In this document: piece after piece, positions 10,401 to 62,177 of the stretch
Numbering within the stretch: the stretch's first letter is position 1
Layout of the letters: every line of letters begins with the position of its first letter
NCBI GenBank assembly: GCA_002269645.1
Contig: NIVC01000061.1
Coordinates: 186,001-250,000 of the forward strand
Direction: 5' to 3'
Origin: Macrostomum lignano
Lineage: Eukaryota
Length of the DNA stretch: 64,000 bases
Translations under genes and position numbers: made by a program
The notes under the pieces: generated by a model
Told to the model about the DNA's origin: nothing
The model's input: only the letters and a program-made list of their open reading frames with translations
Database searches by the model: none

Positions 10401-12151
10401 CCGCCAATTCAGAAAAATGATTCAGTCGAACTGAAGCAGTTGAGACGAAAATATGAGAAAATGAAGTTAGAGAGGAATCTGTTGACTATAGAAGAAGAAG
10501 GAATCTGGAAAATTGTTTTGCCTAAGTCTTTAGATAAGCTAGTGTTTAGCGATCTGCATGATAGCCCGCTAGAAGGACATTTAGGTAGAGACAAAACAGT
10601 TCAGCGAGTTAGAGAGAGATTCTGGAGACCAGGCTTAGTAGCCGCAGTAGAAAAGCATGTGGCAGAGTGCATCCCATTCTTAGAAAGCAAAAGAGGCCAT
10701 AAAGTACAAGCTCCGATTCAGTCATTTCCAATTAGTGAGCCATTTCACCGATTACACATAGATGTGATAGGGCCAATTTCAAAGATTAGCAAAAGAGGCC
10801 ATCAGTATGTGTTGACAATAGTAGACAGCAATACTCGCTATCCATTTGCATTTCCAATGCGCAACCAAAAAGCTGACAATTATTAAGCTATTGCAAGAAA
10901 GGGTATTTAGTGAATATGGCCAATGCCAATGGATTCACACAGATAATGGCAAGGCATTCACTAGCAAACAATTTAGTGCATTCTGTGAGTTGTACAATGT
11001 GAAGCATACTTTCACAACTCCATATCACGCACAGAGCAATGGTTTAGTTGAGAGATTTAACAAGCAGGTCAAATCAATAGTCACATGCCTGATTGAGAAA
11101 GACCATAGTAATTGGGATTTATTAATTCCGGCAGCCTTAGTCGCAGTGAGAACTAGCGTTAATCAATCTACAGGCTATTCGCCGCATTTTTTATTGTTTG
11201 GCAGAGAGGCAGTTTTGCCCATAGACAGCGAACTTAGAGAGCCAAATCAATACGCTAATTATCCGACCTATGTAGCCGAACATGCCGAAAGATTAGAAAG
11301 TGCTAGAAAAATAGTTAAGGATAAAGAAAGTGCATGACAAAAGGCAGACAGACGCCGAGAATCAGAAAAAGCCAAAGGCTATCGAAGTAGGAAGCTTAGT
11401 GCTAATTAATAATCCACAACTTAACATTGACGAATCTAATAAGTTTCATAGGAAAAAGAGAGCCGCCTTTAGAGTGCTTAAGCAAATCTCAGAAGTAGTT
11501 TTTAATATTCAGAAAGAAGAGGAAGGCGAGTTAGTAGGTAATAAGCTCTTAGTGCATAGGGATAACATGGCCCCAGTGCCAAACTCTGTGAAAGAGCCAA
11601 TAGATAAGGGAAGCCAGGAGAGCGCTGAGACAGTAGAAATTATTAATAAGAAAAGCCAGACGAAAGCTAAGCATTCAAATGGAAGAAATCAGCAGGAGGT
11701 AGGACAATCAAGCAAGGGAAGCCACGTCAGAAAGAATAAACTAGAAGAATCAGCTATCGAATTAGGAGAGGAAAGCTCTGATGAAGAACAGCCGAAGTGG
11801 TTTTGCAAGATTCGTGAAAATGAACAATCGGTACATGAGAATGAATCAGAGTTGGAAGCAGAGTCAGAAGTTGAGATAGAAAATGCTATGCAATTTGAGA
11901 GCCTAGTGGAAACGGAGAGGTCAGAGCGAGAGGGAGGAGAAGTAACAATCGATAACAGACATGAAACAGAGCCGGGGGAAGGAGAAGGCGCGCATGCGTG
12001 CCACACCGAGAATGGGGGAACGCCAGACAAAGAGGGTAATAAAACTAAACCATATAACACACGCAGCCGCACTAGGCCGCCCGTCAGATGCCAGTGTTAT
12101 CTAAAAAAGCTGGCTACCGTTTGGAGGTTGTTAGAAAAACTAGACTTTTAG
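7386..12151 (+). pseudogene. pol: Gypsy Pol (protease, RT, RNase H, integrase) with disablements
   Basis: FLIDTGA protease, YIDD RT, DTDASD/RTDH RNase H, HLGRDKT zinc finger, HIDVIGP/HTDNG/NGLVERFN integrase. Stop at 8904-8906 and frameshifts near 10880 and 11335. Confidence 0.93.
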
Positions 12152-13827: not shown

Positions 13828-14890
13828 TGTAATAGGGTCGATCTTTTATTCTTACTAATAGTAGTTTTAAGCGGGTTTAATGAGCTATTTTTACTCAGCC
13901 AATCAGTGAATTTCCTTGTTTAAATCCCTAAATTGTTTTGTTTTAAATAATCTCAGCCAATGGAGTTTAATACTTTGTTAAAATTTCGTAAACTATTTTT
14001 GTTATAATTAATTTCAACCAATCAAATTGAGTTTTATCCCCTATATAAACGAAACAATTTACCAAAAATAAAAGTAACTTGCTCTTCCGCGAATCTTCGC
14101 GAGCTCGCTCTCAATCGGAGAAGCAGCGTTTGACATTCAAACCAAAACGTAAGTTGAAACCTGCGAGTCTTAGTTCTTTGTACGAATACAGGACTAGGGA
14201 TCAGAATAGGGAGAAACCAGAGGTCGTGGAGACCCAGAACTAGGGATCAGAATAGGGAGAAACCAGAGGTCGTGGAGGCCCAGAACTAGGGATCTGAATA
14301 GGGAGAAACCAGAGGTCGTGGAGACCCAGAACTAGGGATCTGAATAGGGAGAAACCAGAGGTCGTTGAGACCCAGAACTAGGGATCAGAATAAGGAGAAA
14401 CCAGAGGTCGTGGAGACCCAGAACTAGGGATCTGAATAGGGAGAAACTAGAGGTCGTGGAGATCCAAGATAAAGGTCTAAAAATAAGGAGAAATTTAAGG
14501 TCGTACAGACTCTAAGAAAGCCGTACTGGCTAATAATAGGTATTAGGGGCTAGGAGATTAGGCATTAGAGGAGTGAATTAGCTACTGCTGGACACCCTTG
14601 ATCCTCGGAAAACGCTAGGCTTTCGGACTAAATTAGGGAATTAGACAGTGTCTTACCGCTCGGGCACTACACGCTATCACAAGGTTTCTGAGAAATCGTG
14701 TGAAATTAGAGAAAGGTCATAGTTTAGGGCAGCCAATACTACTAGAAATAGGCAGCTTAGTGATAAGAGCCAGAAAGTCTGTAAAGACTCGGTGGCTTTA
14801 CGGTGAAATCGCAGTTAGGAACGATTACGTCTGCGACAACTTGGTGACATCTAGTGGGATCTAGAAGAAGGAGGAAACACGTCTGTGACA
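13828..14890 (+). repeat. Gypsy 3' LTR (1063 bp, 6 copies of the 46-bp unit)
   Basis: Direct repeat of 5464-6390; the 136-bp length difference equals 3x46 minus a 2-bp indel. Confidence 0.95.
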
Positions 14891-15705: not shown

Positions 15706-18700
15706 TTGAAAAAAAGGCGTCGAGTTGAAATTCCTACCTTCTACGGGGAAAAACAGCAGTACAAGGTGTGGAAGGCAGCGCTCATGGCTTGCATCGATAG
15801 GGCTCCAGCAACACCAGAGTTCAAACTGCTGCAGTTGCGTCAGTACTTGCGTGGATTAGCGCTGAAGGTAATAGAGCACTTGGGTCATTCGGCTGCTGCC
15901 TACTAGGCGGCCAAGGAGAGATTGGAGCGTGAGTACGGCGGCAAGCAACGACAGTTGGCGCACTACTTGGAGGAGCTAGATAGTTTTCTACCCGTGAAGC
16001 AGAATAGTGCCAAGGAGCTGAAGAAATTCGCAAACATCCTTGATGTGGCTGTAATTAATTTGGAAGAAGCTGGTAAGAACTCCGAACTTAGTGATGGACT
16101 ACTTTATGCTAGACTGCAAAAAAGCTACTGGAACCAATGGTCACAGCATTTCGTCGATGGATCTTCGAGAAGGCGAAAGCAGAAGGCATTAGGACCCTTT
16201 GAGAGTGGGTTTTGCGCGAGGCAGAGTTCCGGACTGAGGCAGCAGAAATTGTGTACAGGGTGGCTGCATTGAGTCAGGAGCAACCAAGAAAGGACAGCAA
16301 GCAAAAAGCCTTCCATGTAGGTAGCTAAGCAAGAGCTCAAGCAAGGAGAGCTACTCCTGTGTTGTCTGCAAGGAGGCTCACGGTTTATGGAAGTGTCCGG
16401 CGTTCGCGAAGCTGTCATCTGAGAATCGATAGAAGGCTGCTCAGGAGGCCAAAGGTTGTTTCTGCTGTCTTGGCCATGGTCACACCGGTATGAACTGCCA
16501 ACGAGGTCAAAAGTGCGGCGTTGATGGATGCACCAAATCCCACCATCATCTGCTGCATTCAATAGCAAGATCGGAATCGAAAGACAAGCCAGAAGTAAAA
16601 GCCGGTGCTGAGCAAGAAATGCAGTTGCAGCCAAAAGCTGCAACCGTGACAATGGTCGCTAGAGAAGCCAGTGCGGTTTCACTTCAAATAGTTCCGGTCA
16701 TTCTTAAGGCGAATAGGCGAGCGGTGAAGGTCAATGCCTTACTTGATGATGCCAGCACAAAGATCTATTTGAATACGGCGATAGCATCTAAGCTTTGTTG
16801 CACGGCAAACAGGAATCAATACAGGTAAACGTGTTGAATGGACAGGTGGAAACCTTCATAACAGCACCAGTGTCATGCACCTTGGAGAGTACTGATGGCC
16901 AAATAAGCAAGGAGATTACTGTGCTGACGGTAGATAGAGTGACCGGGAACATAGAAGTAGTAGATTGGCAAACATTAGTGTCGAAATGGTTGCACTTAGC
17001 AAACATTCCATTTCTAAGAATGCAAACACCAGCGGAGGTTGACTTGCTGATCAGAGTTGATCATCCAGACTTACATGCATCACAGTTGGAAGTGACCGGC
17101 AACCCAGGAGATCCGCAAGCACGGCTAACACCTTTAGGTTGGACTTGTATCGGTAGAGTTGATGGAGCTTCGGAGCACGCATTGTTTGCAAACACATTCT
17201 TCAGCCGAGGCGGGTCTGAGAATCTAGCGCCACTGTTACGCCAGTTTTGGGAAGTAGAAGAAGTGAGAAGCATTGAACCATCTTCATTTACTAATGCAGA
17301 GCAGCTCGCTTTGGAAAGAACTCGATCATTGCTAAAGTTTGTCAATGGGCGATACCAAGTTGGCATTCCGTGGAAACCGGATGTCACATTTAAAGATAGC
17401 AACTTTGAAATGGCTATCAGGCGGCTTGCAAATACCAAAAAGAGGCTCCGCAAAGATCCGGATCTAGCAAAGCAGTATCAGGACGTCATCAGTTGCTATG
17501 AAAATGTTGGCTACATCAGAAGAGTACTGGAGCATGAGCAACAACTAGCGAACAGGTATCACCTTTCTCATTTCCCAGTGGTTTGGATGGATAAGGCAAC
17601 TACCAAGGTGCGCATCATCTTTGATGCTTCAGCTGGCGGTGAGGAATCATTGAATAGCCTGATGCTGGCAGGACTGAAGCTTCAGAAAGATCTGGTTGAT
17701 GTGCTCCTGCGCTTCAGGAGACATCCAGTGGCGGTTGCTTGCGACATTTCTGAAATGTACTTGCAAATTGCGATAGCACCAGAAGATCGGGCAGCGCACA
17801 GCTTTCTGTGGCGGGACATAGATCCAACAAAGGTACCACAGACATTCAAGTTCAACCGAGTGGTTTTTGGAGCAACGAGCTCACCATTTCTGGCGCAATT
17901 CGTGACTCAGGAGCACGCGAAAAAGCTGAAGCAGGAGTTTCCATCGGCTGCAGAAACAGTGCTCCAGTCAACTTACATGGATGACTGCCTGGATTCGAAG
18001 AAGACTGATTCAGAGGCTATTCAGTTGTATCAAGAGCTGAGCCAATTGTAGGAGCGAGCTGGCACTCACGCTAGGAAGTGGATTTCAAACTCAAGAGCAT
18101 TGCTTGCGTGTGTAGCACCAGAGGATAGAGTTGCGGAGGTGAGCCTGGATGGTCAGCCATTGCCAGTTTCGAAGACGCTTGGAGTAGTCTAGAAAGTGAG
18201 GACAATGAATTCACCTTTGTTGCTGATAGCAAGCTAAGGCCAGTCAAGTCAAAGAGAGATCTGCTAAAGAGATTGGCTTCAGTGTACGATCCTCTCGGAC
18301 TGATAGCACCTTTCACTACAAAGGCAAAGATACTACTGCAGGAGCTCTGGTGCAGCGGCCTTCATTGGGATGAAGCGCCAGACAAGGCTCTGCAAAGGAG
18401 GTTTCAAGCATGGTGTGCTGACCTGATGAAGCTGAACTGCTTTCGAGTTTATCGCTGTCTGCAGTTCTATTGCGTGCCTATGCATTCTCAGCTTCACTGC
18501 TTTGTCAATGCTTTGGAGAAGGCCTACGGAACAGTGTGTTATCTATGATGCAAGTACACCGACGCCTTGATATCCGTTCAGCTCATCGCTGCCAAGTCTT
18601 GAGTTGCACCCATAGCAATTATGAGCATTCCGAGGCTGGAGCTGATGGCAGTGGTCATTGGGCTGAATCTAGCGGTCAAGATTGCCAAGGCACTAGAGAT

Positions 18701-20560
18701 GAACATCAAAGATGCGGTATTCTGGTCGGACAGCATGAATGTTCTGTTTTGGATTCGTGGAAGAGGACGCTTCTTTAAACCATTCGTTACGAACCGCATC
18801 GGAGAAATCCAGCAGGCAACTGATCCGAACCAGTGGAGACACGTGCCAACGGCATGCAATCCTGCCGATCTGCTGTCAAGAGGCGCAATGATAACTCAGC
18901 TGGCCGAGGATCAGAAATGGAAAACGGTCCAGAGTTTTTACATCATGACAATTACAAGTGGCCAAGTACCAGGTTGGAGCGACCAGCAGACCTGGAGACG
19001 AAAGGTTCGGCGAAAGATTCAGTCCCGTCCAAAGCGGTCATGTGTGCAACAATAATCACCAGCGAGCAAATAAAGCATCAAGTAGAGTGGCTCGACCCGA
19101 GCAGGTTCTCTAGCTAGATGAAATTCCTGAGGGTAAATGCCTGGATTAGCAGATTTGCCAACAATTGTCGCTTCGAACCACAGTACTGAACTTGAGGAAA
19201 GCTGCAGGCGGCGGAGCTGGAAGACGCGGAGTTAAGAATCATCAAGGATGTACAGCAAGATGCATTCAGCATGGAGCTTTCCGCCTTGAGGAAGAACAAG
19301 AGCGTTTCTGAGAGCAGCAAGCTGGCTAGAATGCATCCAAGACTCAATCCTAGCGGCGTTCTTCGCTCAGAGAGCCGTCTACAGTTGGCCGAAGCATTGC
19401 CGATTACGGCGATTAGTATCAGATCACTAATCATCTTGCCAAAGTGCCATCACGTGACAGAATTAATAATCAAGCACCATCACGAAAAAGCATATCACAT
19501 GGGCACCAATCAAGTACTTGCTGCAGTGACTGCTCGATTTTGGATCCCAGCTGCCCGAGAGGCCATCCGAGCTTGGGAAGTCAAGTGTGCTGAGTGCAGG
19601 AGAAGAAAGGCACAGCCAGCTTCGCAGTTGATGGCACCACTGCCTCCCAGTCAGCTAGACCATTAAGAGCATTTACGAAAGTATCAATAGATTTTGGAGG
19701 TCCATTCCTAACAAAGCAGGGTCTGGGACGTGTGCGTCAGAAGCGGTACCTTGCGCTCTTCACTTGTATGGCAACGCGTGCAGTTCATTTAGAAATGGCA
19801 TACGGCCTTGATGCAAGCAGCTTCCTAAACGTGTTGTTTTGCATGATCAGTCACTGAGGTCAAGTTCTGGAAATCTTCTCAGTCAATGGAACTAATTTTG
19901 TTGGTGCGGATAGAGAACTAAAGGAGCTGTGCAAGTCGATGGACAAGAACGCATTGCAGTCACGCACATCTCACGTACCGATCAAGTGGCACTTTAATCC
20001 GCCTGCGGCTCTGCACTTCGGCAGCATGCATGAGTCAATGATAAAATCAGCAGAGAGCGATAAATGCGATCCTGAGATCAGCAGAAGTCAGCAATGAGCA
20101 GCTTGTAACAGCATTTGCCAGAGCAGAGTCGCTGCTGAACTCACGGCCTTTGACCTACCAGTCATCCCATCCTGGTGACAATCCAGTCCTGATGCCAGCG
20201 CACTTCCTGTACGGGCACTTTGGTGGACAGCTGGCACCGGAGATCTCGGCTGACGAGGTGTTCAACCCAACCAAGCGGTGGCGCTACGTGCAGCAGCTGG
20301 TGCAGTCATTTTGGCGGCAATGGCTCCGAGAGTGGCTGCCTGGCCTCAGTGCGAGAACCAAATGGCAGTGAGAGCAGCCCGACCTCAAGCCCGGGGACGT
20401 CGTGCTGTATATCTGTCCGGACAGCCCTCGGGGTCACTGGCCTCTGGCTTGAGTCCTAGAGGTGTACCCAGGTCGAGACAGCCATGTTCGAAGAGCAAAG
20501 GTGCAGCTGGTAGACAAGGTTCTGACGTGGCCAATGAACAGACTGTGCCCATTGATTACT
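15706..20560 (+). pseudogene. BEL/Pao gag-pol polyprotein, fragmented by many stops and frameshifts
   Basis: EIPTFYG..KLLQLRQYLRG gag, CQRGQKCGVDGCTKSHHHLLH knuckle, ALLDDAS protease, RIIFDAS/FGATSSPF/YMDD RT, IPRLELMA/NPADLLSRG RNase H, IDFGGPF/AVHLE integrase, KRWRYVQQLVQSFWRQW tail. Confidence 0.92.
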
Positions 20561-26227: not shown

Positions 26228-28265
26228 TCAGCCTTGCCCGAATGAGCGCTGTTGCTGTTTGTTTAGCCTAGTGCAGGAGTCCAGGCTTGTGGCGCATGAG
26301 TTCAGAGTTTTTGAGCACAAGCTGAGATTTCTGACGCATAGGTTCAGGATCCATCGTTCAGGGGATTCCGGCTTCTTAGGTTCACATGGAGAGGGAGTAG
26401 TTGGAGCACGAGTGGAGGGCTCAGAAGAGTGCGTTGGAACTCTTGGCGAAGACGTTGAGGCTTCAGGTCGAGCAGTCGGTTCTTCAGGCTTAGCAGTCGG
26501 TTCTTCAGGCTTAGCAGTCGGTTCTTCAGGTTTCCTAGTCGGTTCTTCAGGCTTAGCAGTCGGTTCTTCAGGCTTAGCAGTCGGTTCTTCAGGCTTAGCA
26601 GTCGGTTCTTCAGGTTTCCTAGTCGGTTCTTCAGGCTTAGCAGTCGGTTCTTCAGGTTTCCTAGTCGGTTCTTCAGGTTTCCTAGTCGGTTCTTCAGGCT
26701 TAGCAGTCGGTTCTTCAGGTTTCCTAGTCGGTTCTTCAGGTTTCCTAGTCGGTTCTTCAGGTTTCCTAGTCGGTTCTTCAGGTTTCCTAGTCGGTTCTTC
26801 AGGTTTCCTAGTCGGTTCTTCAGGCTTAGCAGTCGGTTCTTCAGGCTTAGCAGTCGGTTCTTCAGGTTTAGCAGTCGGTTCTTCAGGCTTAGCAGTCGGT
26901 TCTTCAGGCTTAGCAGTCGGTTCTTCAGGCTTAGCAGTCGGTTCTTCAGGTTTCCTAGTCGGTTCTTCAGGCTTAGCAGTCGGTTCTTCAGGCTTAGCAG
27001 TCGGTTCTTCAGGTTTAGCAGTCGGTTCTTCAGGCTTAGCAGTCGGTTCTTCAGGCTTAGCAGTCGGTTCTTCAGGCTTAGCAGTCGGTTCTTCAGGCTT
27101 AGCAGTCGGTTCTTCAGGCTTAGCAGTCGGTTCTTCAGGCTTAGCAGTCGGTTCTTCAGGTTTCCTAGTCGGTTCTTCAGGCTTAGCAGTCGGTTCTTCA
27201 GGTTTCCTAGTCGGTTCTTCAGGTTTCCTAGTCGGTTCTTCAGGCTTAGCAGTCGGTTCTTCAGGCTTAGCAGTCGGTTCTTCAGGCTTAGCAGTCGGTT
27301 CTTCAGGTTTAGCAGTCGGTTCTTCAGGTTTAGCAGTCGGTTCTTCAGGCTTAGCAGTCGGTTCTTCAGGCTTAGCAGTCGGTTCTTCAGGCTTAGCAGT
27401 CGGTTCTTCAGGTTTCCTAGTCGGTTCTTCAGGCTTAGCAGTCGGTTCTTCAGGCTTAGCAGTCGGTTCTTCAGGCTTAGCAGTCGGTTCTTCAGGCTTA
27501 GCAGTCGGTTCTTCAGGCTTAGCAGTCGGTTCTTCAGGCTTAGCAGTCGGTTCTTCAGGCTTAGCAGTCGGTTCTTCAGGCTTAGCAGTCGGTTCTTCAG
27601 GTTTAGCAGTCGGTTCTTCAGGCTTAGCAGTCGGTTCTTCAGGCTTAGCAGTCGGTTCTTCAGGCTTAGCAGTCGGTTCTTCAGGTTTCCTAGTCGGTTC
27701 TTCAGGCTTAGCAGTCGGTTCTTCAGGCTTAGCAGTCGGTTCTTCAGGCTTAGCAGTCGGTTCTTCAGGTTTAGCAGTTGGTTCTTCAGGTTTAGCCGTC
27801 GGGGCCTCAGGTTCAGTAGTTGAGGCTTCAGGTTTAGCAGATGGGAATTCAGGTTTAGCCGTTGGGCCTTCAGGTTCAGCAGTCGCATCCATTGAGTCCT
27901 CCGGTTTCAAGGTCGAATCTGCAGAGAGAATTTTGTGCATTTATTTTATTCAAAAGCATCAGCAGAGCTGCATATAATACTGATTTATTAGTCCCAGCCA
28001 GTCCTTAATCCTTGCATGCAACTCATTGCCAAGCAGTTATTCTCGCTACTCACAGTGTGCCGGGATGCTGATGAGACACACGTGTCCGATCAGCAGCAGC
28101 TCAATCAGCAGCAGAAGGAACTTGTCTGAAAAGTACATTTGAGTTCGATTAGGAATATCAATGCAGGTTCGAATTACTTTCTTGACAACCATACTGTATT
28201 GATAAAGTATAACCGCAGCAATCTTAGTACGCGCTCGTAGTCTGCTTACGGGTTTCAGCCGCCAT
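26228..28265 (-). CDS. Secreted repeat protein A, ~592 aa: signal peptide, 63x KPEEPT(A/R), Leu/Cys-heptad tail; exons 28265-28250, 28125-28054, 27918-26228
   Basis: Canonical GT-AG junctions, all phase 1, summing to 1779 nt. N-terminus MAAETHKFLLLLIELLLIGHVCLIS. Paralogous to genes B and C. Confidence 0.8.
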
Positions 28266-29549: not shown

Positions 29550-30646
29550 TCACTGGCGAATCAAGCATTCGAAGTTCTTCATCGAGTAGAACAGCGTCAG
29601 CTCCAGGCCAGCGTCGTGCAGATAATAGTACATTCCTCCGCCTGAAAATGCGGCTGGTGGCAGCAGGTACACTCCGTTGGGGTTGATAAAAGTGCACCAG
29701 CCGAACCACCAACCAGCTGACCTGTCATGGGCGCAGCTGCCCCCAGCCCAGTTGTCATTGTCAGCATCCGGCGTGCTGAACTGCCAGCTGTTCGGTGACC
29801 AGTCCGAATAAGTTCGCTGTCCGACACTCGACCTGCTCGCGTCCAACGGTCCCATCGAGCACCTGTACTTGTCGGTCGCTGGGCCAACAGAGAACGGAGC
29901 ATTCTCAGCCCAGTACCAGGTGCCGTTCCAGTCGCTGAACTCCCAGCGGACTCTCCATCCTCCAGTGGCGGTGAGCTGGTGCAGCTGCTCCAGCCCCATC
30001 CAGTAGTTGAGACTCTCGCCCTGACCGAATCCGTTGACGTACTCCGACCAGCCACGGTTGAAGCTGACGGAGCCGTCGACTCTGCGCTGGAACGTCGTCC
30101 AGAAAATCTCCGACGGCTCCTTGATCTGCAGTTCGAGAGACAAAGCAATGCAGTCAGTGACTGGTGCTCAGGGGCTCAAGACTCAGCTCACTCACCCACA
30201 GCATCAGCAGACTCAGCTCACTCACCCACAGCATCAGCAGACTCAGCTCACTCAGCGACAGCATCAGCAGACTCAGCTCACTCACCCACAGCATCAGCAG
30301 ACTCAGCTCACTCACCCACAGCATCAGCAGACTCAGCTCACTCACCCACAGCATCAGCAGACTCAGCTCACTCACCCACAGCACCGGCAGACTCAGCTCA
30401 CTCACCCACAGCACCGGCAGACTCAGCTCACTCACCCACAGCACCGGCAGACTCAGCTCACTCACCCACAGCACCGGCAGACTCAGCTCACTCAGTCTCG
30501 CCTTGAGCTCGGATCGATTTGAGCAGCCGGTACTCGGAGACGTCGCCTCGGAGCTGCTTCCAGCTCGTGACGGCCGCCGAGACGGCCGGCAGGGCGAGCA
30601 GGGCGGAGGCGATGGCGCAGAGATGAAGACTCAGAGTTGGACTCAT
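29550..30646 (-). CDS. Secreted fibrinogen-related domain (FReD) protein; exon 1 30646-30492, FReD exon from ~30131 to 29550; splice phase unresolved
   Basis: WTTFQRRVDGSVSFNRGWSEYVNGFG, YWMGLEQLHQLT, FSTPDADND, C..GWWF..C...NPNG motifs. Signal peptide MSPTLSLHLCAIASALLALPAVSA. Confidence 0.85.
30181..30494. repeat. 30-bp minisatellite filling the FReD intron, 10.5 copies
   Basis: Unit ACTCAGCTCACTCACCCACAGCA(T/C)C(A/G)GCAG. Confidence 0.95.
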
Positions 30647-33780: not shown

Positions 33781-34296
<516 letters not shown>

Positions 34297-34800: not shown

Positions 34801-35616
<816 letters not shown>

Positions 35617-40612: not shown

Positions 40613-42517
40613 TCAGTCCACACCCCCGTCCGCTTCTTCATCAAACGGCGGAGGCGGCGGCCCCAGGCCGTTCAGCAGCTGCCGCACCGACTCCAGGAGG
40701 CCCGCCAGGCCGCCGCCACCACCGCCTTCTCCGCCCTCGGCGCCCTGGGGCTGCGGCGGCGCGCTCAGGTCGAAGTTGGGCATCAGGGAGCGCAGGAAGG
40801 CGGTCAGCAGACCGTCGTCGGCAGCGGAGGCGCCGCCAGCGCCGGCGCGAAGTCGGCGCAGCCGGTCGAGTTCGTAGCCGCACACGGAGTCGGGCGGCGG
40901 CAGCGGGTCGAAGGCGTTCAGCCCGGCCGGGTCGACGTCCGCCGGCAGGTCGGCGAGGGCGTCGCGGACCTCGGAGACGACCAGGTGCCGGAGGACGTTC
41001 AGCGGGGTGCGCCGGTAGCGGCGGCGTCGCCGCTCGGCGGCCTCAGCGATGCGAGGATCCGGCGGGGTGGCGGCGGCCGCTTCGGCGACGCGGGCGGCGC
41101 CGGACACGAGGAAGGTGACGGCGGCGGCCTCCTTCCAGCAGTGGCCGCAGCGCTGCACGTAGAGGCCGCACAGCTGGCGAAGTCCGGGACTCGAGTCCCG
41201 GTCGGCCTCGGCGGCGCTAAACAGGCGGCAGCCGGACACGGGAGGCGCGGCCTCCACGCTGAGGCGGGCGAGCAGCGGCGCCAGCACAGAGGGGAACTGG
41301 ATGAGCGCAGCGTCCAGAGCAGCGGCGGCATCGGGGCGGCCCAGGCGGAAGCGGGCGAGGGCGGCCGAGAAGGCCCAGTTGGGCAGCTGGGTCAGGTGCC
41401 TGGACGGCTCCCAGGCGTGCAGCAGGCGGAGCAGGAACTCCTCCTGGCCTGACATGAGGCAGGCGGCATCGATGAGCAGCAGGGAGCCCATGGGATCGGC
41501 GGTGGGGCTGAGGCTGAGCAGCAGCTTGCAGGTCTCCAGGCAGGCGCGGTGGCAGCAGCGGCCGGTCAAGGCGAGGGCGTGGCGCAGCAGCGCCGAGAAC
41601 AGGGCGCGGTTCTCGCGCCGGGCGAAGCTGAGGCGGCAGCGGTCGCTGGCGAAGCTGAAGCCGGGCGCAGCGGCGCATTCCATGGCGTACAGGGCGCGCT
41701 CGACCAGGTCGGCGGCGGTGGCGGCGTCCTCCTGCAGGCGGAAGACCTCGGCCAGCTGCAGCAGGGTGTCGACGTGGTAGGGCTGCCGGTGCAGGATCTC
41801 GGCCAGGCGGTCGGGCTGCCCGGACTCGACGGCGTCGGCGAAGGCCAGCTGGGTGCGCTCGTACTCGCGGCTGTGCTCAAACCGGTAGGCGGCGCTGCCA
41901 GCCGGGAAGCCGTCCGAGGCGAAGGTCTCCGCGTCCGGCGACATGGACAAGCCGAGGCGGACCACCGGCGGCCACGTGGGCTTCGGCTGGGCCAGCAGGC
42001 CGCGCCGCCAGCCGCCCGGCTGCTGCTGCTGGAGCCGCCTGATGGACGGCTGGCGGGCCGCCGACTCCCCTGCCGCCTGGCCGAACAGCCGCCGCAGCTC
42101 CTGGCCGCCGTCCAGCAGGCGGAGGTCGACGCTGAGCAGCGGCTTGCCGCCTCCGCCGCTGACGTTCGACACCGCCGAGACCGTCGCCGGAGGTGCCGGG
42201 TTCGAGTCGGCGCTGGCCAGAGCCGCTGCGAACTCGTCCTCCTCATCCACTGCGGCCTCCCCGCCCTTCCGCTTGCCTGGCTTCTTGTTCTTCTTCTTTT
42301 TCTGCTTCTGCTGCGGCGGCTGCGGGCTGCTCGGCTCCGCCTCCTCTCCGGCATCCTCAGCCTCCGACTGCGACATCAGCAGCGCGAACTGGTTGACCCG
42401 GCCAGCGGGCTCAGCATCCTCAGCTTCATCTTGAGCAGCCGCGTCCGTCTTCTCCAGCTCGGCCGCCTTGGCCGCGGCCTCCGCCTCCTGCAGCTTTCGT
42501 AAAACTCGACGGGACAT
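40613..42517 (-). CDS. TCF25: Transcription factor 25 / ribosome quality control factor Rqc1 homologue, 634 aa, intron-free CDS
   Basis: MSRRVLRKL N-terminus; FEHS..Y...Q..F..AVES, PYHVDTLLQL, LVERALY, ENRALF, CKLLLSL.P..DPMG.LL.ID motifs of the TCF25/DUF654 family. Confidence 0.93.
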   Translation of the reverse strand: MSRRVLRKLQEAEAAAKAAELEKTDAAAQDEAEDAEPAGRVNQFALLMSQSEAEDAGEEAEPSSPQPPQQKQKKKKNKKPGKRKGGEAAVDEEDEFAAALASADSNPAPPATVSAVSNVSGGGGKPLLSVDLRLLDGGQELRRLFGQAAGESAARQPSIRRLQQQQPGGWRRGLLAQPKPTWPPVVRLGLSMSPDAETFASDGFPAGSAAYRFEHSREYERTQLAFADAVESGQPDRLAEILHRQPYHVDTLLQLAEVFRLQEDAATAADLVERALYAMECAAAPGFSFASDRCRLSFARRENRALFSALLRHALALTGRCCHRACLETCKLLLSLSPTADPMGSLLLIDAACLMSGQEEFLLRLLHAWEPSRHLTQLPNWAFSAALARFRLGRPDAAAALDAALIQFPSVLAPLLARLSVEAAPPVSGCRLFSAAEADRDSSPGLRQLCGLYVQRCGHCWKEAAAVTFLVSGAARVAEAAAATPPDPRIAEAAERRRRRYRRTPLNVLRHLVVSEVRDALADLPADVDPAGLNAFDPLPPPDSVCGYELDRLRRLRAGAGGASAADDGLLTAFLRSLMPNFDLSAPPQPQGAEGGEGGGGGGLAGLLESVRQLLNGLGPPPPPFDEEADGGVD

Positions 42518-42661
42518 GGCGAGCTGCTGCCCGCCGCTCGAGTGCTGCGATCGGTAACGACTGCCGACTCAGGTCGGTGCGGATAATCTTCCCAACTTGG
42601 GAGAACTTTGCTGGAACAAGAGGGTGACTCGATTGCATGGGATGGGAATCAGCCGAGCATT

Positions 42662-43700
42662 CTGATGGGGACCTGATGGGGACCTGATGGGTATCTGATG
42701 GGGACCTGATGGGGACCTGATGGGTATCTGATGGGTATCTGATGGGTATCTGATGGGTATCTGATGGAACCCTGATGGGTATCTGATGGGGACCTGATGG
42801 GGACCTGATGGGGACCTGATGGGGACCTGATGGGTATCTGATGGGGACCTGATGGGGACCTGATGGGTATCTGATGGGTATCTGATGGGTATCTGATGGG
42901 TATCTGATGGGTATCTGATGGGTATCTGATGGGGACCTGATGGGGACCTGATGGGGACCTGATGGGTATCTGATGGGTATCTGATGGGTATCTGATGGGT
43001 ATCTGATGGGTATCTGATGGGGACCTGATGGGTATCTGATGGGTATCTGATGGGTATCTGATGGGTATCTGATGGGTATCTGATGGGGACCTGATGGGGA
43101 CCTGATGGGGACCTGATGGGTATCTGATGGGGACCTGATGGGGACCTGATGGGGACCTGATGGGGACCTGATGGGGACCTGATGGGGACCTGATGGGGAT
43201 CTGATGGGGATCTGGTGAGGATTCTGGTGGGTATCTGATGGGTATCTGATGGGGACCTGATGGGGATCTGGTGGGGATCTGGTGAGGATTCTGGTGGGTA
43301 TCTGATGGGTATCTGATGGGGACCTGATGGGGATCTGGTGGGGATCTGGTGAGGATTCTGGTGGGTATCTGATGGGTATCTGATGGGGACCTGATGGGGA
43401 TCTGGTGGGGATCTGGTAAGGATTCTGGTGAGGATTTTGGTGGGGATCTGGAGAGGATTCTGATGGGGATCTGGTGAGGATTCTGATGGGGATGTGATGG
43501 GGATCTGGTGAGGATTCTGATGGGGATCTGGTGAGGATTCTGATGGGGATGTGATGGGGATCTGGTGAGGATTCTGATGGGGATCTGGTGAGGATTCTGA
43601 TGGGGATCTGATGGGGATCTGGTGAGGATTCTGATGGGGATCTGGTGAGGATTCTGATGGGGATCTGATGGGGATCTGGTGAGGATTTATATAGTGACTC
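42662..43700. repeat. G-rich 11-bp minisatellite CTGATGGG(GAC/TAT), degenerating into CTGGTGAGGATT
   Basis: Direct observation; starts ~145 nt upstream of the TCF25 ATG. Confidence 0.95.
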
Positions 43701-44355
43701 TGGTGGGGACTTTGATGGGGATCTTGATCGGAATTCTGGTGGATATTCTGGTGGGGATTTTGGCGGGGATTTGATTGGGATTCTAGTATGGAGTTTTAGT
43801 ATATTGGATTTTTATCTGGTGGGTTCCGCTTCTGAAATACCGATCGTCACCAATTATCACCCAGACAGCAAATAAAACTCAAACTCAAACTCAAAATGCA
43901 AAACTTCTGCCCAGAGCAGCGCAGCTCAGAAGCAATGCGCCAAGCGTTTCCAATATTTTATTGTAGAGCAGCAGTGCATAAAATTGGGTCTGTGTTATAA
44001 ACAGGTTAAGCAGGCAATGTAAAGTTAGCACAGACTAATAAAAGTGAATGAACAAAGTGAGGCATGCAGTCTGCAAGCACGTCGGCAGCAATAGGGAATC
44101 CATAAGATATCTAGCAAATATATTGAATATAAATATATCGAGTATAAATACAAAATAGTGGAATCTCATCAGTAATGAAAAGTAATTCTTATTGGCAGGT
44201 AAACAAACATTCCTAGCATGCGCCAGTACGCCTAGCATAGTGCTTGCGCAGCCGCCCGTTCCACGCAACTCTGGCGGCTCGCAAATGGGAAGACTCGAAT
44301 GTTTGAATCGGGAGCAGAGAGCAAAACAGAAGGCTTAAACAATGGATTGTCTGCT

Positions 44356-44955
44356 CTCACTCAGAGATCCGGGCAAGCCCTCACTCAGAGATCCGGGCAA
44401 GCCCTCACTCAGAGATCCGGGCAAGCCCTCACTCAGAGATCCGGGCAAGCCCTCACTCAGAGATCCGGGCAAGCCCTCACTCAGAGATCCGGGCAAGCCC
44501 TCACTCAGAGACCCGGGCAAGCCCTCACTCAGAGATCCGGGCAAGCCCTCACTCAGAGATCCGGGCAAGCCCTCACTCAGAGATCCGGGCAAGCCCTCAC
44601 TCAGAGATCCGGGCAAGCCCTCACTCAGAGATCCGGGCAAGCCCTCACTCAGAGATCCGGGCAAGCCCTCACTCAGAGATCCGGGCAAGCCCTCACTCAG
44701 AGATCCGGGCAAGCCCTCACTCAGAGATTCGGGCAAGCCCTCACTCAGAGATCCGGGCAAGCCCTCACTCGGAGATCCGGGCAAGCCCTCACTCGGAGAT
44801 CCGGGCAAGCCCTCACTCAGAGATCCGGGCAAGCCCTCACTCAGAGATCCGGGCAAGCCCTCACTCAGAGATCCGGGCAAGCCCTCACTCAGAGATCCGG
44901 GCAAGCCCTCACTCAGAGATCCGGGCAAGCCCTCACTCGGAGATCCGGGCAAGCC
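44356..44955. repeat. 24-bp minisatellite (CTCACTCAGAGATCCGGGCAAGCC) x25
   Basis: 600 bp, highly homogeneous. Confidence 0.95.
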
Positions 44956-45334
44956 CACAATCTGCATAATAACCTATCTGGGATAAAGACTGAGCAGCCA
45001 TAACAAAGACACATGTAAATGTCGGCATCGGTGTGCCAGTGACAGGCTGGAACATTTAGGATGAACAGGAAGGCCCGCCATGCAGTTGGACAAAAACGCG
45101 CATTGGAAATCATAATAAAATGGGAAGTCAAAACAACCGGAGACAATTTTAATAAAAAAACAACACAGACGGGCGCAGGAGTGACTTGAGTGGCAAGGGC
45201 GTTGCGTTGCCAAGCTGAAGCCGGCATGCTGAATATAAATTGAATTTGTCACTCTGTGCATGCGTCACTCCGGGCTGTTGTCACTCAATGTTTAACTAAG
45301 ACTGTGCAACTATACAGAATGATCGCCCGCTGTC

Positions 45335-47866: not shown

Positions 47867-48273
<407 letters not shown>

Positions 48274-49194: not shown

Positions 49195-54917
<5,723 letters not shown>

Positions 54918-55513: not shown

Positions 55514-55825
55514 CTCTGCTTTGGCAATAATCAATTTCTCTGCTTTGGCAATAATCAATTTCTCTGCTTTGGCAATAATCAATTTCTCTGCTTTAGCAAT
55601 AATCAATTTCTCTGTTTTGGCAATAATCAATTTCTCTGTTTTGGCAATAATCAATTTCTCTGCTTTGGCAATAATCAATTTCTCTGTTTTGGCAATAATC
55701 AATTTCTCTGTTTTGGCAATAATCAATTTCTCTGCTTTGGCAATAATCAATTTCTCTGTTTTGGCAATAATCAATTTCTCTGTTTTGGCAATAATCAATT
55801 TCTCTGCTTTGGCAATAATCAATTT
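55514..55825. repeat. 24-bp minisatellite (CTCTG(C/T)TTTGGCAATAATCAATTT) x13
   Basis: Direct observation. Confidence 0.95.
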
Positions 55826-56020
55826 TTCTGCCCACCTGTTAAAGGTGCCGACGGTGTCGGGTTGATGATTGAATGCTTGAGAGACTAGCTTAGGATGTCC
55901 AACAGTCGAGGCTTGATCGGCGAAACTCGAGAAATTCGCATCAGGGTGTTCATAGTCACCTGGTGCCACCTGTTGACGGTCCAGAAGCTCCGTCTCGGTG
56001 TAGGCCAGTGATCAACGAAG

Positions 56021-56922
56021 TCAGAGCCTGATGCAGACACATGTCAGAGCTGATGCAGACACATGTCAGAGCTGATGCAGACACATGCCAGAGCTGATGC
56101 AGACACATGTCAGAGCTGATGCAGACACATGCCAGAGCTGATGCAGACACATGTCAGAGCTGATGCAGACACATGTCAGAGCTGATGCAGACACATGTCA
56201 GAGCTGATGCAGACACATGTCAGAGCTGATGCAGACACATGTCAGAGCTGATGCAGACACATGTCAGAGCTGATGCAGACACATGTCAGAGCTGATGCAG
56301 ACACATGTCAGAGCTGATGCAGACACATGTCAGAGCTGATGCAGACACATGTCAGAGCTGATGCAGACACATGTCAGAGCTGATGCAGACACATGTCAGA
56401 GCTGATGCAGACACATGTCAGAGCTGATGCAGACACATGTCAGAGCTGATGCAGACACATGTCAGAGCTGATGCAGACACATGTCAGAGCTGATGCAGAC
56501 ACATGTCAGAGCTGATGCAGACACATGTCAGAGCTGATGCAGACACATGTCAGAGCTGATGCAGACACATGTCAGAGCTGATGCAGACACATGTCAGAGC
56601 TGATGCAGACACATGTCAGAGCTGATGCAGACACATGTCAGAGCTGATGCAGACACATGTCAGAGCTGATGCAGACACATGTCAGAGCTGATGCAGACAC
56701 ATGCCAGAGCTGATGCAGACACATGTCAGAGCTGATGCAGACACATGTCAGAGCTGATGCAGACACATGTCAGAGCTGATGCAGACACATGTCAGAGCTG
56801 ATGCAGACACATGTCAGAGCTGATGCAGACACATGTCAGAGCTGATGCAGACACATGTCAGAGCTGATGCAGACACATATCAGAGCTGATGCAGACACAT
56901 GCCAGAGCTGATGCAGACACAT
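56021..56922. repeat. 22-bp minisatellite (CAGAGCTGATGCAGACACATGT), about 41 copies
   Basis: Direct observation. Confidence 0.95.
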
Positions 56923-57172
56923 CTCTAGCATTCTGACAATGCATTTCAAGTCGAAAACTTTTGCTTGACCTTTGCAAAAAGCACGTTTTTCAAATATTTA
57001 ATCCACTTAGCAGAGAGAAAATTCTTAGCCACGACACATGTACCGTCAACAAAAAAATTCTGATCGAATGGTGCAAGTTTGAAGAAAATCGGTTGAGCCG
57101 TTTTTGCTAAATCAATCGCACACAGACAGACAGAAGATAGACAACTCATTTCAAAGGCTTACATGGGCAATC

Positions 57173-58480
57173 GCTGAGCTGTCAAAACTTGGAGAGTTGC
57201 TGAGATGTCAAGACTTGGGGAATTGCTGAGATGTCAAGACTTGGGGAGTTGCTGAGATGTCAAGACTTGGAGAATTGCTGAGATGTCAAGATTGAAGAAT
57301 TGCTGAGATGTCAAGATTGAAGAATTGCTGAGATGTCAAGACTTGGGGAGTTGCTGAGATGTCAAGACTTGGGGAGTTGCTGAGATGTCAAGATTGAAGA
57401 ATTGCTGAGATGTCAAGATTGAAGAATTGCTGAGATGTCAAGATTGAAGAATTGCTGAGATGTCAAGACTTGGGGAGTTGCTGAGATGTCAAGACTTGGG
57501 GAGTTGCTGAGATGTCAAGACTTGGGGAGTTGCTGAGATGTCAAGACTTGGAGAATTGCTGAGATGTCAAGATTGAAGAATTGCTGAGATGTCAAGATTG
57601 AAGAATTGCTGAGATGTCAAGACTTGGGGAGTTGCTGAGATGTCAAGACTTGGGGAGTTGCTGAGATGTCAAGATTGAAGAATTGCTGAGATGTCAAGAT
57701 TGAAGAATTGCTGAGATGTCAAGACTTGGGGAATTGCTGAGATGTCAAGACTTGGGGAATTGCTGAGATGTCAAGACTTGGGGAATTGCTGAGATGTCAA
57801 GACTTGGAGAATTGCTGAGATGTCAAGACTTGGGGAGTTGCTGAGATGTCAAGACTTGGGGAATTGCTGAGATGTCAAGACTTGGGGAATTGCTGAGATG
57901 TCAAGACTTGGGGAATTGCTGAGATGTCAAGACTTGGGGAATTGCTGAGATGTCAAGACTTGGGGAGTTGCTGAGATGTCAAGACTTGGAGAATTGCTGA
58001 GATGTCAAGACTTGGGGAATTGCTGAGATGTCAAGACTTGGAGAATTGCTGAGATGTCAAGACTTGGAGAATTGCTGAGATGTCAAGACTTGGGGAATTG
58101 CTGAGATGTCAAGACTTGGGGAGTTGCTGAGATGTCAAGACTTGGGGAATTGCTGAGATGTCAAGACTTGGGGAATTGCTGAGATGTCAAGACTTGGAGA
58201 ATTGCTGAGATGTCAAGACTTGGAGAATTGCTGAGATGTCAAGACTTGGAGAATTGCTGAGATGTCAAGACTTGGAGAATTGCTGAGATGTCAAGATTGA
58301 AGAATTGCTGAGATGTCAAGACTTGGGGAGTTGCTGAGATGTCAAGACTTGGGGAGTTGCTGAGATGTCAAGACTTGGGGAGTTGCTGAGATGTCAAGAC
58401 TTGGGGAGTTGCTGAGATGTCAAGACTTGGGGAGTTGCTGAGATGTCAAGACTTGGGGAATTGCTGAGATGTCAAGACTT
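57173..58480. repeat. 25/26-bp minisatellite GCTGAGATGTCAAGA(CTTGGGGAGTT/TTGAAGAATT), about 50 copies
   Basis: Direct observation; two length variants occur in blocks. Confidence 0.95.
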
Positions 58481-59345: not shown

Positions 59346-59617
59346 CCTGCACTCTCAAATGTAGCGACCACAGACGGAATCTTCGGTGATGGCGACTTTT
59401 CGATGTTGCTAAGTATATATGCGAGCTCGAGCCGATATGGGTCAGTAGGTCCAGAGTATCACAAATCAAGTCCGCAGAACAAAAGATATTGTCAAATTAA
59501 ATGTGTAATTTGTGATTTAGTGATGCGGAATACAGTAGGTCAGATAATATCAGGCGGCGCTTTAGGTCGATTCCGTCTAAACTCCAGCTTGAGCAGTCGA
59601 AACTTGAACTGTCGAAG

Positions 59618-62177
59618 TTAAGCTCGATCAGTCAAGGCATCAGGTCGATCAGGCGCAGCTTTGGGTCGATCAGGCGAAGCTTTAGGTCGATTCAGTCGAA
59701 ACTCGAGCAGTCGAAGCTCCAGATTGAGTAGTCGAATTTCGTGCAGTCGAAGCTCGAGAAGTCGAAGCTCCTGTCTGAGCAGTCGAAGCTTGAGCAGTCG
59801 AAGCTGGAGCTGTCGAAACTTTAGCTTGAGCAGTCGAAGCTCGAGCTGTCGAAGCTCACGCTCGATTCGTCGAAGCTCCAGCTTGAGCTGTCGAAGTTGA
59901 TCAGCCGAGACATCAGGCCGATTAGTCGAAGGTTCAGGTCGAGCAGTCGAAGGTTCAGGTCGAGCAGTCGAAGGTTCCGGTCGAGCAGTCGAAGGTTCAG
60001 GTCGAGCAGTCGAAGGTTCAGGTCGAGCAGTCAAAGGTTCAGGTCGAGCGGTCGAGGCTTCAGGTCGAGCAGTCGAAGCTTCAGGTCGAGCAGTCGAAGC
60101 TTCAGGTCGCTTCAGTCGAAGCTTCAGCTCGAGCTGTTGAAGCTCCAGCTCGAGATGTCGAAGCTTCAGCTTGAGCAGTCGAAGCTCAAGCAGTCGAAGC
60201 TTCAACTTGAGCAGTCGAAGCTCAAGCAGTCGAAGCTTCAACTTGAGCAGTCGAAGCTCAAGCAGTCGAAGCTCCAGCTCGAGCTGTCGAATTTCAGGTC
60301 GATCAGTTGAGGCATCAGGTCGATCAGGCGAAGCTTCAGGTGGATTCAGTCGAAGCTTCAGCTTAAGCAATCGAAGCTCCAGCTCAAGCTGTCGAAGCTT
60401 CAGCTTGAGCAGTCGAAGCTTGAGCAGTCGAAGCTTCAGCTTGAGCAGTCGAATCTTAAGCAGTCGAAGTTCGAGCTCGAGCTGTCGAAGCTTCATCTTG
60501 AGCAGTCGAAGCTGGAGCAGTCGAAGCTTCAGCTTGAGCAGTCGAATCTCGAGCAGTCGAAGCTTCAGCTTGAGCAATCGAAGCTCGAGAAGTCGAAGCT
60601 TCAACTCGAGTTGTCGAAGTTCAGGTTGATCAGTCGAGGCATCAGGTCGAGCAGTCGATGTTTCAGGTCGCGCAGTTGAAGCTTCAGGTGGAGCAGTCGA
60701 TGTTTCAGGTCGCGCCGTTGATGTTTCAGGTCGAGCAGTCGATGTTTCAGGTCGAGCAGTCGAGGCTATAGGTTGAGCAGTCGATGTTTCAGGTTGGGCA
60801 GTCGAGGCTTCAGGTCGAGAAGTCGATGTTTCAGGTCGAGCAGTCGATGTTTCAGGTCTTGCAGTCGATGTTTCAGGTCGTGCAGTCGATGTTTCAGGTC
60901 GGGCAGTCGAAGCTACAGGTCGAGCAGTTGAAGCTTCAGGTCGAGCAGTCGAGGCTTCAGGTCGGGCAGTCGAGGCTTCAGGTCGAGCAGGCCAGGCTTC
61001 AGTTAGAGCAGTCGAGGCTTCAGCTTGAGCAGTCGATGTTTCAGGTCGAGCAGTCGATGTTTCAGGTCGAGCAGTCGAGGCTTCAGGTCGAGCAGTCGAG
61101 GCTTCAGGTCGGGGAGTCGATGTTTCAGGTCGGGCAGTCGATGTTTCAGGTCGTGCAGTCGATGTTTCAGGTCGGGCAGTCGATGTTTCAGGTCGTGCAG
61201 TCGATGTTTCAGGTCGGGCAGTCGAAGCTACAGGTCGAGCAGTTGAAGCTTCAGGTCGAGCAGTCGAGGCTTCAGGTCGGGCAGTCGAGGCTTCAGGTCG
61301 AGCAGGCCAGGCTTCAGTTTGAGCAGTCGATGTTTCAGGTTGGGCAGTCGAGGCTTCAGGTCGAGAAGTCGATGTTTCAGGTCGAGCAGTCGATGTTTCA
61401 GGTCGTGCAGTTGATGTTTCAGGTCGGACAGTCGAAGCTACAGGTCGAGCAGTTGAAGCTTCAGGTCGGGCAGTCGAGGCTTCAGGTCGAGCAGGCCAGG
61501 CTTCAGTTCGAGCAGTCGAGGCTTCAGCTTGAGCAGTCGATGTTTCAGGTTGGGCAGTCGAGGCTTCAGGTCGAGCAGTCGAGGCTTCAGGTCGAGCAGT
61601 CGATGTTTTGGGTCGAGCAGTCGATGTTTCAGGTCGAGCAGTCGAGGCTTCAGGTCGAGCAGTCGAGACTTCAGGTCGGGGAGTCGATGTTTCAGGTCGG
61701 GCAGTCGATGTTTCAGGTCGTGCAGTCGATGTTTCAGGTCGGGCAGTCGATGTTTCAGGTCGGGCAGTCGAGGCTTCAGGTCGAGCAGTCGAGGCTTCAG
61801 GTCGAGCAGTCGAGGCTACAGGTGGAGCAGGCCAGGTTTCAGGTCGAGCAGGCGAGGCTTCAGGTCCTAAAGTCGAGATTTCAAGTGGATCAGTGCAGCT
61901 AAAATCTTAAATTTTTTTCTCGTTAACTTAGAGCATGCGGATCTGTGCAAAGCTGTCATTACTCACGTTCTGTCGGGACGCAGTGACACAGGCGACCAAC
62001 AAGCAGCAGCTCAATTAAAAGCAAAAGAAACTTATCTGAAAAAAACAAAGTTAGAAACCGAATTTAACCCTTCAAATCTACAAAGTCTGGCTTAAAAATG
62101 AACTGTTAGAGCAGATCTCATCACCAGGGATTAACTAACTAATCTCAGTTTGCTCACTCACCAGTTTGGCCCGCCAT
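59618..62177 (-). CDS. Secreted repeat protein C, ~790 aa: signal peptide and ARPE(A/T)ST stalk alternating with three Leu/Arg/Lys-rich blocks; C-terminus probably truncated
   Basis: Exons 62177-62162, 62035-61967, 61905-59618 sum to 2373 nt. N-terminus MAGQTDKFLLLLIELLLVGRLCHC. The last acceptor (tttaag|AT) is weak but in phase. 61930-62590 aligns with 54690-55330 of gene B. Confidence 0.65.

Follow-up and report, generated by a model that had tools for sequence, protein, structure and literature searches.

A 64,000-nucleotide stretch of the Macrostomum lignano genome (GenBank assembly GCA_002269645.1, contig NIVC01000061.1, positions 186,001 to 250,000 of the forward strand), hereafter the window, carries on its minus strand a gene, here called gene C, in which one 21-nt minisatellite appears to be read in two frames within a single open reading frame (ORF). 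The first reading gives a mucin-like repeat, P-E-A/T-S-T-A-R (the PE frame), and the +1 reading gives a cationic, Leu-rich repeat, LRLLxLK (the Leu frame); gene C changes to the +1 frame three times and each time later returns to the PE frame. The best overall explanation, judged to stand a little above even chances, is that gene C belongs to a small tandem family, that its frame alternation descends from a single compensated frameshift, that the resulting mosaic is translated, and that the Leu blocks form helices which associate with one another. These components differ in strength, the anatomy and the single origin being far more secure than the function.

Gene structure and frame switches

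Gene C is composed of three exons on the minus strand, 62177-62162, 62035-61967 and 61905-59618, together encoding approximately 790 codons. The first exon (62162-62177) is ATGGCGGGCCAAACTG, followed by a GTGAGT donor, and both its ATG and its donor are kept across the paralogues A, B and C. The second (61967-62035), also closed by a GTGAGT donor, encodes the hydrophobic, signal-peptide-like sequence DKFLLLLIELLLVGRLCHCVPTE; within it, the putative signal segment FLLLLIELLLVG is hydrophobic, follows a short charged N-terminus and is conserved in A, B and C, and copies of the exon are found by tblastn at 54805-54710 in the B locus and at 28129-28076 in the A locus. The third exon (59618-61905), joined in frame in phase 1 through an acceptor AG at 61907-61906, holds the entire repeat ORF, a minus-strand frame that ends with TAA at 59620-59618 and is open back to 61905. 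Its tandem repeats are rich in Pro, Thr and Ser, as in PTS-repeat proteins, with 61 + 13 units of PEA/TSTAR.

Most of this exon is taken up by the PE array (60621-61895, minus strand), in which about 61 repeats of the 21-nt unit encode P-E-A/T-S-T-A-R without a single indel over 1275 nt. Further downstream on the same strand are Leu block 1 (60347-60619, 91 aa), a PE-frame linker NPPEASPDRPDASTDRPE (60293-60346) extending from exit 1 to entry 2, Leu block 2 (60113-60292, 60 aa), a middle PE segment of 72 aa (59897-60112) made of three PEASTAR units, six PEPSTAR units and NRPDVSADQ, Leu block 3 (59693-59896, 68 aa), and a PE-frame tail NRPKASPDRPKAAPDRPDALTDRA (59621-59692) that runs into the TAA. 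The indels were mapped by wraparound alignment of gene C to the 21-nt unit CCTGAAGCTTCGACTGCTCGA. The first two entries into the Leu frame are 1-nt deletions at 60620 and 60293, both at unit position 6 (the G of GAA-G-CT), and the third is a net loss of 7 nt at 59911-59897; the exits at 60346, 60112 and 59692 are all 1-nt insertions at unit position 15. Inside the Leu blocks, the repeat is built of 15-nt (LRLLE) and 21-nt (LRLLKLK) units, often joined as a 36-nt super-repeat of 12 aa, which occurs three times in Leu block 2. The PE frame of the blocks, still rich in Ala, Ser and Thr, contains seven stops, including the TGA at 60188-60186. Given that the frame is changed by indels which recur at identical positions of the unit, and that of six frames the mosaic one alone is stop-free, the arrangement is more than chance. 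On this anatomy, a previous reading made from the letters alone (the sequence-only reading) holds up well: the open frame and the wraparound alignment confirm its one repeat in two frames, its coordinates and lengths for the three blocks match exactly, and its entry by net 1-nt loss, return by 1-nt gain, 15- and 21-nt units and decay of the PE frame through TGA stops within the blocks were all found again, with the third entry specified as a 7-nt loss.

The TAA lies where the CCTGAA of a fourth entry would be expected (the sequence reads GCTTAA), and it looks like a recent truncating mutation or polymorphism. Past it, a vestigial fourth module (59540-59617, minus strand), which continues in frame, consists of a Leu block LRQFKFRLLKLEFRR at 59617-59573, an exit insertion at 59572, the residues NRPKAPPDII and a TGA at 59542-59540. 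It overlaps a stretch (59516-59553, minus strand; TTATCTGAC..CCGCATCACT) homologous to the 3' untranslated region (UTR) directly past the stop of gene B. If the mosaic frame is translated, the predicted junction peptides of the product are ASTDQPELRQLE, LRLNPPEASPDRPDASTDRPEIRQLE and LKLRLKRPEASTARPE, and the predicted block-type repeat peptides of the family include (LRLLELRLLKLK)n and, for the B type, (LKLRLLD)n.

Programmed ribosomal frameshifting was also considered and rejected; the DNA ORF is continuous across all six junctions, and no recoding is therefore needed. As a separate observation, the repeat unit (window 59600-61900) holds an 8-nt palindrome, GAAGCTTC, and the Leu-block units hold CTCGAG. 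The entry deletion removes a base inside the palindrome, and it may be speculated that a hairpin or slippage there favours the indel.

Paralogues and origin of the frameshift pair

Genes A, B and C constitute a tandemly arranged three-gene family that shares a start exon, a signal-peptide-like exon and a 21-nt, P/E/S/T-rich coding minisatellite. Common to all are a 16-nt ATG exon, a GTGAGT or GTAAG donor, a hydrophobic exon of 69-72 nt and a second GTGAGT donor, while the introns differ by large indels. In the B locus (51289-54805, minus strand), the signal-peptide-like exon at about 54805-54735 is followed by five CUB-like ORFs and then by the repeat exon. This last exon (49195-51186, minus strand) comprises a PEASTDR array (51090-49790), a Leu block of 14 LKLRLLD units (49788-49486) and a C-terminal domain with four Cys (49485-49198). 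The block is bounded by an entry deletion at 49789 and an exit insertion at 49485, at the same unit positions as in gene C, has no internal indel, and is required to join the PE array in frame to the C-terminal domain. Gene A (26228-27940, minus strand) has a KPEEPTA array and the same C-terminal Cys motif but no frame switch; its C-terminal domain is homologous to that of B (44% identity, E 7e-18, four Cys). Two side observations concern these loci. The KPEEPTA array, at 26228-27977, contains about 67 units with 92% matches, and a perfect (AGT)170 tract at 52169-52678, (ACT)170 on the minus strand, lies between the third and fourth CUB-like ORFs of B, where a minus-strand reading would give poly-Thr, poly-Leu or poly-Tyr depending on the frame.

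The absence of the switch from paralogue A, the outgroup, marks the PE frame as the ancestral one. One and the same variant unit, CCT GAY GCY YCR AYT GAT CNA CCT GA|A (P-D-A-S-T-D-x-P-E), stands before each of the five entries (C1-C4 and B), and four of the five exits read CTG/CAG|AAT CGA CCT (L/Q-N-R-P). The shared variant units and indel positions imply that the frameshift pair arose once, before B and C separated; the non-coding DNA flanking the two genes is now about 74% identical (about 26% divergence). As the pair was copied as a module in C, the alternation of signs is inherited rather than the outcome of six independent compensations, so that the three separate entries implied by the sequence-only reading turn out to be copies of one ancestral entry/exit pair shared with gene B. 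Its other proposal, that the Leu-rich module was created by frameshifting a mucin-like PTS repeat, is borne out by the mapped compensating indels and the still recognisable ancestral frame, and a compensated frameshift pair is seen four times in C and once in B. Descent from one shared pair also excludes random errors of assembly. Judged from the sequence, this anatomy and a single ancestral origin amplified in C are very probably correct. In addition, no C-terminal Cys domain is present downstream of gene C, where only the 3' UTR homology to B was found; a gene without this domain but with a B-like 3' UTR motif after its fourth module is best seen as a derived, shortened paralogue.

The following history is very probable. 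The +1 frame of the 21-nt minisatellite is stop-free by consensus. In the B/C ancestor, the GAAGCT of a variant unit, PDASTDxPE, lost 1 nt, which shifted the array into that frame, and a downstream 1-nt insertion, turning CTGCT into CTGAAT (L-N-R-P), restored the original frame and left the intervening stretch to read LKLRLLD. In gene C, the module of entry, Leu block and exit then multiplied to four copies, the last of which now stands behind the stop, and the blocks were remodelled to the 15+21-nt (12-aa) super-repeat LRLLE-LRLLKLK, with loss of Asp, Pro and the Pro codon of the PE frame.

Probable translation of the mosaic frame

The case for translation comes mainly from the distribution of stops. 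Over the 2280 nt (760 codons) of gene C, the mosaic frame has none and the other five frames have 24, 85, 11, 7 and 19; in gene B, the count is zero against 3-79. Stops of the Leu frame occur solely in PE segments and stops of the PE frame solely in Leu segments, with five distinct variants in each case, and four of the five PE-frame variants are CTC to CTT changes, silent in the Leu frame and nonsense (CGA to TGA or CAA to TAA) in the PE frame. Of all possible substitutions, a greater share would introduce a stop in the used frame than in the other one (0.049 vs 0.034 and 0.058 vs 0.043), so neutrality predicts at least as many stops in the former. That approximately 10 distinct stop variants all fall in the unused frame has a probability of 0.42^10, or about 2e-4, before allowing for ascertainment. 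Moreover, the 414 codons of the PE array, if read in the Leu frame, would include six stops as well as 40 Pro and 34 His, and the Leu blocks of C contain no Pro, Gly or Asp. Taken together, these patterns suggest that the mosaic frame is translated and constrained against nonsense, a conclusion that is somewhat favoured.

A considerable body of evidence weighs against it, and much of this would be expected if the mosaic were a neutral by-product, that is, a compensated frameshift tolerated in a low-complexity region, with functionless Leu blocks and with C as a decaying, truncated duplicate of B whose blocks multiplied through unequal crossing-over. Open frames come cheaply in this repeat: by consensus, the unit lacks a stop in five of its six frames, the mosaic part has only 2-3 stops in two plus-strand frames, and zero stops are thus just moderately surprising. 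Gene A makes the same point, since its unused +1 frame (LKNRLLS) runs through 514 codons without a stop, as does a plus-strand frame through 572, which indicates that the repeat family generates long ORFs with ease. Variants are also spread by duplication, and their counts are not independent events. At the amino-acid level, no constraint on the Leu frame is apparent: differences from the block consensus show no synonymous enrichment (24/65 vs 35% expected), and the avoidance of Leu-to-Pro changes, at none of 128 T2 sites vs about 3 expected, is too weak to use. The Leu block of B has barely diverged from the PE array, being a near-perfect PEAST repeat with one stop when read in the PE frame, and the C-terminal domains of A and B give a ratio of nonsynonymous to synonymous substitution (dN/dS) of about 1 on 43 codons. 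Gene C is without the CUB exons of B, has lost the C-terminal domain and stops within its fourth module, all of which fits a decaying copy too. Finally, no protein of A, B or C is present in the protein collections searched, though annotated M. lignano proteins are.

Against a neutral by-product stand, besides the stop variants that avoid the used frame despite equal or higher opportunity, the intact start codon, splice sites and signal-peptide-like exon of gene C, the purging of Pro, Gly and Asp from its blocks together with their homogenisation to a new 12-aa super-repeat, and the persistence of the design since the B/C split, over which the flanking DNA has diverged by about 26%. On balance, neutrality is rather unlikely, albeit the likeliest of the alternatives. 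Selection, which the sequence-only reading held to maintain the Leu module, is thus upheld only as far as avoidance of nonsense is concerned; constraint on the amino acids themselves finds no support. In our reading of the sequence, the ORF would be kept open while what lies inside changes with hardly any restraint, a common behaviour of secreted low-complexity proteins.

Predicted structure of the product

If translated, the three Leu blocks would total 219 aa, or 28% of the gene C protein, with 49% Leu, 65 Lys and Arg (30%), 24 Glu and a net charge of +41. AlphaFold2, run on single sequences without alignment, predicts helices that coincide with the three blocks, over query residues 12-105, 122-184 and 253-324, corresponding to 60628-60347, 60298-60110 and 59905-59690. 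In gene B, it predicts a helix of 103 residues over residues 23-125 (49794-49486) and a second helix for the Cys domain. The predicted local distance difference test scores (pLDDT) of the Leu-block helices are 75-95 in the C model and 75-97 over the C and B models together, vs about 50 for the PE linkers of C, which are predicted to be disordered. It should be noted that AlphaFold2 tends to call Leu-rich sequence helical regardless, a tendency that counts against the structural part of the proposal.

In all four blocks, the hydrophobic moment has its maximum at 150-155 degrees per residue and shows no rise around 100 degrees, which means a helix without a polar face and speaks against both the LK-type lytic model and a canonical two-stranded zipper. 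Such a profile fits sticky, multi-faced helices that would bundle or aggregate. The product is accordingly pictured, as a model only, as a secreted chain in which three cationic helices, of 60-90 residues and about 50% Leu, take turns with PTS stretches that are disordered and probably O-glycosylated; among possible roles, these helices would most likely drive self-association, bundling or cross-linking mucin-like chains, rather than lysis. As a statement of function, self-association of this kind in preference to membrane lysis is tentative and, on the predictions at hand, doubtful. In a wider interpretation, the minisatellite would act as a two-state block, giving a disordered, glycosylatable spacer in frame 0 and a cationic Leu-rich helix in frame +1, with indels and unequal crossing-over letting selection set the numbers of each; this possibility falls short of even probability.

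The high content of Leu (49%) and of Lys and Arg (30%), the charge of +41 and the predicted helices might also recall cationic amphipathic, membrane-lytic or antimicrobial helices of the LK-peptide type, with segregated apolar and polar faces. No such segregation is seen in any of the four blocks, given where their moments peak, and with 60-100 residues embedded in a mucin-like chain, they are unlike short lytic peptides. A lytic role is therefore very unlikely, and the membrane-active segment envisaged by the sequence-only reading, in its classic amphipathic form, is unsupported.

Splicing and assembly as alternative explanations

The translated mosaic preferred here would also be undone if the Leu blocks were introns and the protein purely of the PE type. 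Each block together with its two indels is a multiple of three (273, 180 and 204 nt), and removal would keep the frame. The blocks, however, hold a single GTRAG (59859) and no acceptor of the polypyrimidine-AG form, whereas the genuine introns of gene C have GTGAGT donors and T-rich tracts before AG; the GC content and repeat structure of the blocks are like those of the flanking exon. Splicing would make the decay of the PE frame irrelevant but would leave the intact Leu frame unexplained, and it is considered highly improbable. Still less credible is that the 1-nt indels are sequencing or assembly errors in a gene that truly stays in the PE frame: long-read assemblies do make such errors and the array is hard to assemble, but the indels recur at the same unit positions eight times in C and twice in B, always deletion then insertion and within distinctive variant units, they bound segments of different period (15+21 nt) with substitutions of their own, 'correcting' them would give the PE frame seven stops, and the adjoining 1275-nt PE array is free of indels.

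Other features of the window

Apart from the gene C family, the window contains gag-pol ORFs of long terminal repeat (LTR) retroelements, a fibrinogen-related ORF, the CUB-domain ORFs and many minisatellites. At 40613-42517 on the minus strand stands an intronless ORF of 634 aa for TCF25 (Pfam PF04910), to which an annotated M. lignano protein is 98% identical; the ORF lies in a 64.5% GC island within a region of about 45% GC, and several long ORFs that overlap it in other frames result from this GC richness. Synteny at 92-98% identity links window 34.9-45.7 kb to part of another M. lignano contig, NIVC01000292.1:163910-185826; examined for a second copy of gene B, allelic or homeologous, this segment diverges before it reaches the gene C family and contains no PEAST repeat. 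The fibrinogen-related ORF (Pfam PF00147, E 3e-32; 29550-30494, minus strand) stands immediately downstream of a 30-nt repeat of 10.5 copies (30179-30494) and just upstream of the start exon of gene A, and is probably a separate gene.

Repetitive DNA is found throughout. A 46-nt tandem repeat, CAGAACTAGGGATCAGAATAGGGAGAAACCAGAGGTCGTGGAGACC, occurs at 5825-5964 and 14189-14466, flanking the gag-pol ORFs at 6451-12151, and probably belongs to the LTRs of a Gypsy-type element; another retroelement, with pol-like ORFs, is located at 16795-19666. Homogeneous, non-coding-looking minisatellites are present at 42661-43781, 44356-44956, 55514-55831, 56020-56922 and 57164-58480, with unit lengths of 11, 24, 24, 22 and 26 nt, 85-98% matches and up to 100 copies, and two of these occupy the 3 kb between genes B and C. 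Arrays of (GTCT)n/(AGAC)n, 400-500 nt in length, are found at 33781-34296, 35049-35565 and 47869-48273.

Comparison with known systems

Database searches returned no relatives of the family. Pfam gives no match at E<=0.01 for the entire ORF of gene C, and Rfam finds nothing in the window. An exhaustive HMMER search with the 347-aa mosaic part recovered no homologue, its matches being chiefly to the PE segment or to unrelated 7-aa repeats such as LDLKVRP; searches with the B Leu block plus the C-terminal domain, and with CUB4, CUB5 and the C-terminal domain, gave only low-complexity look-alikes or nothing. The Leu-block unit has no exact match in the metagenome contigs scanned, and no identical product is on record for the ORFs of A, B or C or for the TCF25 ORF. 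A full-text literature search on the peptide motifs found no relevant paper, and no published natural protein was found that alternates one repeat between two frames several times in one ORF, the in-silico and MUC1 studies being all that came up, although a text search is not proof of absence. The sequence-only reading had stated that no described family has this design, and no homologous family has indeed emerged; the design in its broader sense is not without precedent, because in-silico frameshifts of tandem repeats have already been described (PMC12871928). In one of the unrelated database proteins, the 7-aa repeat LDLKVR(P/T), which closely resembles the Leu-frame product, is present in about 30 copies, which indicates that repeats resembling the +1 frame exist elsewhere.

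Among established Leu-rich architectures, leucine-zipper and coiled-coil heptads are similar in that the LKLRLLD units of B allow Leu at a and d and that long helices are predicted. In contrast, Leu also falls at b and f, both e and g are basic, and the blocks of C have a 12-residue period. A canonical coiled coil or leucine zipper was rejected as a candidate: there is no single hydrophobic seam near 100-103 degrees, the peak lying at 150-155, and no coiled-coil or bZIP match in Pfam. So was a leucine-rich repeat protein (LxxLxLxxN/C), with no Pfam match and no conserved Asn or Cys. A closer parallel is provided by compensated frameshift pairs, which reportedly serve as a source of protein novelty (ascribed to Raes and Van de Peer in 2005 and Okamura et al. 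in 2006). As there, the new frame is confined to a segment between a -1 and a +1 indel; what differs is that the segment in gene C is a tandem repeat, that the new sequence is itself a regular repeat, and that the whole module was then amplified.

In overall layout, the family resembles animal genes for mucin-type PTS proteins with variable number tandem repeats (VNTRs), which likewise have a signal exon (putative in A, B and C), then a single large exon built from a short coding minisatellite rich in P/T/S/A, a Cys-containing C-terminal end (as in A and B), tandem duplication and fast evolution. The known repeats of animal mucins stay in one frame, however, and the gene C family is without sequence homology to any described mucin. 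What a mucin repeat can encode in another frame is illustrated by MUC1, whose VNTR then yields a repetitive, strongly basic and unrelated polypeptide, as in MUC1fs of a tubulointerstitial kidney disease with autosomal dominant inheritance (ADTKD-MUC1) and in MUC1-ARF (10.1101/2025.09.06.673538; PMC9923703; PMC5074479). Those products result from pathogenic, uncompensated mutations or from alternative initiation, whereas the shift in gene C is fixed in the germline, compensated, present three times in one ORF and shared with a paralogue.

Translation of the mosaic would make it a clean natural instance of an effect hitherto demonstrated chiefly in silico or in disease (MUC1fs): a frameshift would have made a new regular module of opposite physical character, from disordered and acidic or neutral to helical, hydrophobic and cationic, which was kept, compensated and amplified. 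It would also be a junction-resolved and dated case, with the ancestral (A), early (B) and remodelled (C) states side by side in 35 kb. Should the two-state interpretation be true as well, the family would represent a natural, selected 'frame-mosaic' architecture conserved in at least two paralogues. Macrostomum is a model tractable by RNA interference and known for its secreted adhesives, and a mucin with built-in helical cross-linkers may be of interest to biomaterials research. Conversely, if the mosaic is not translated, it would caution that repeats with five stop-free frames yield ORFs that are long, persuasive and meaningless.

The nearest precedent for the principle is the work of Osmanli et al. 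(FEBS J 2025; PMC12871928), in which tandem repeats frameshifted in silico gain hydrophobicity and Arg content, and a disordered repeat can become alpha-helical or coiled-coil. The frames in that study are hypothetical translations; gene C, in contrast, combines both frames naturally within one ORF, and its compensating indels have been mapped. Thus, while the principle that a tandem-repeat frameshift raises hydrophobicity and Arg is already published, the text searches found no published counterpart of the natural mosaic.

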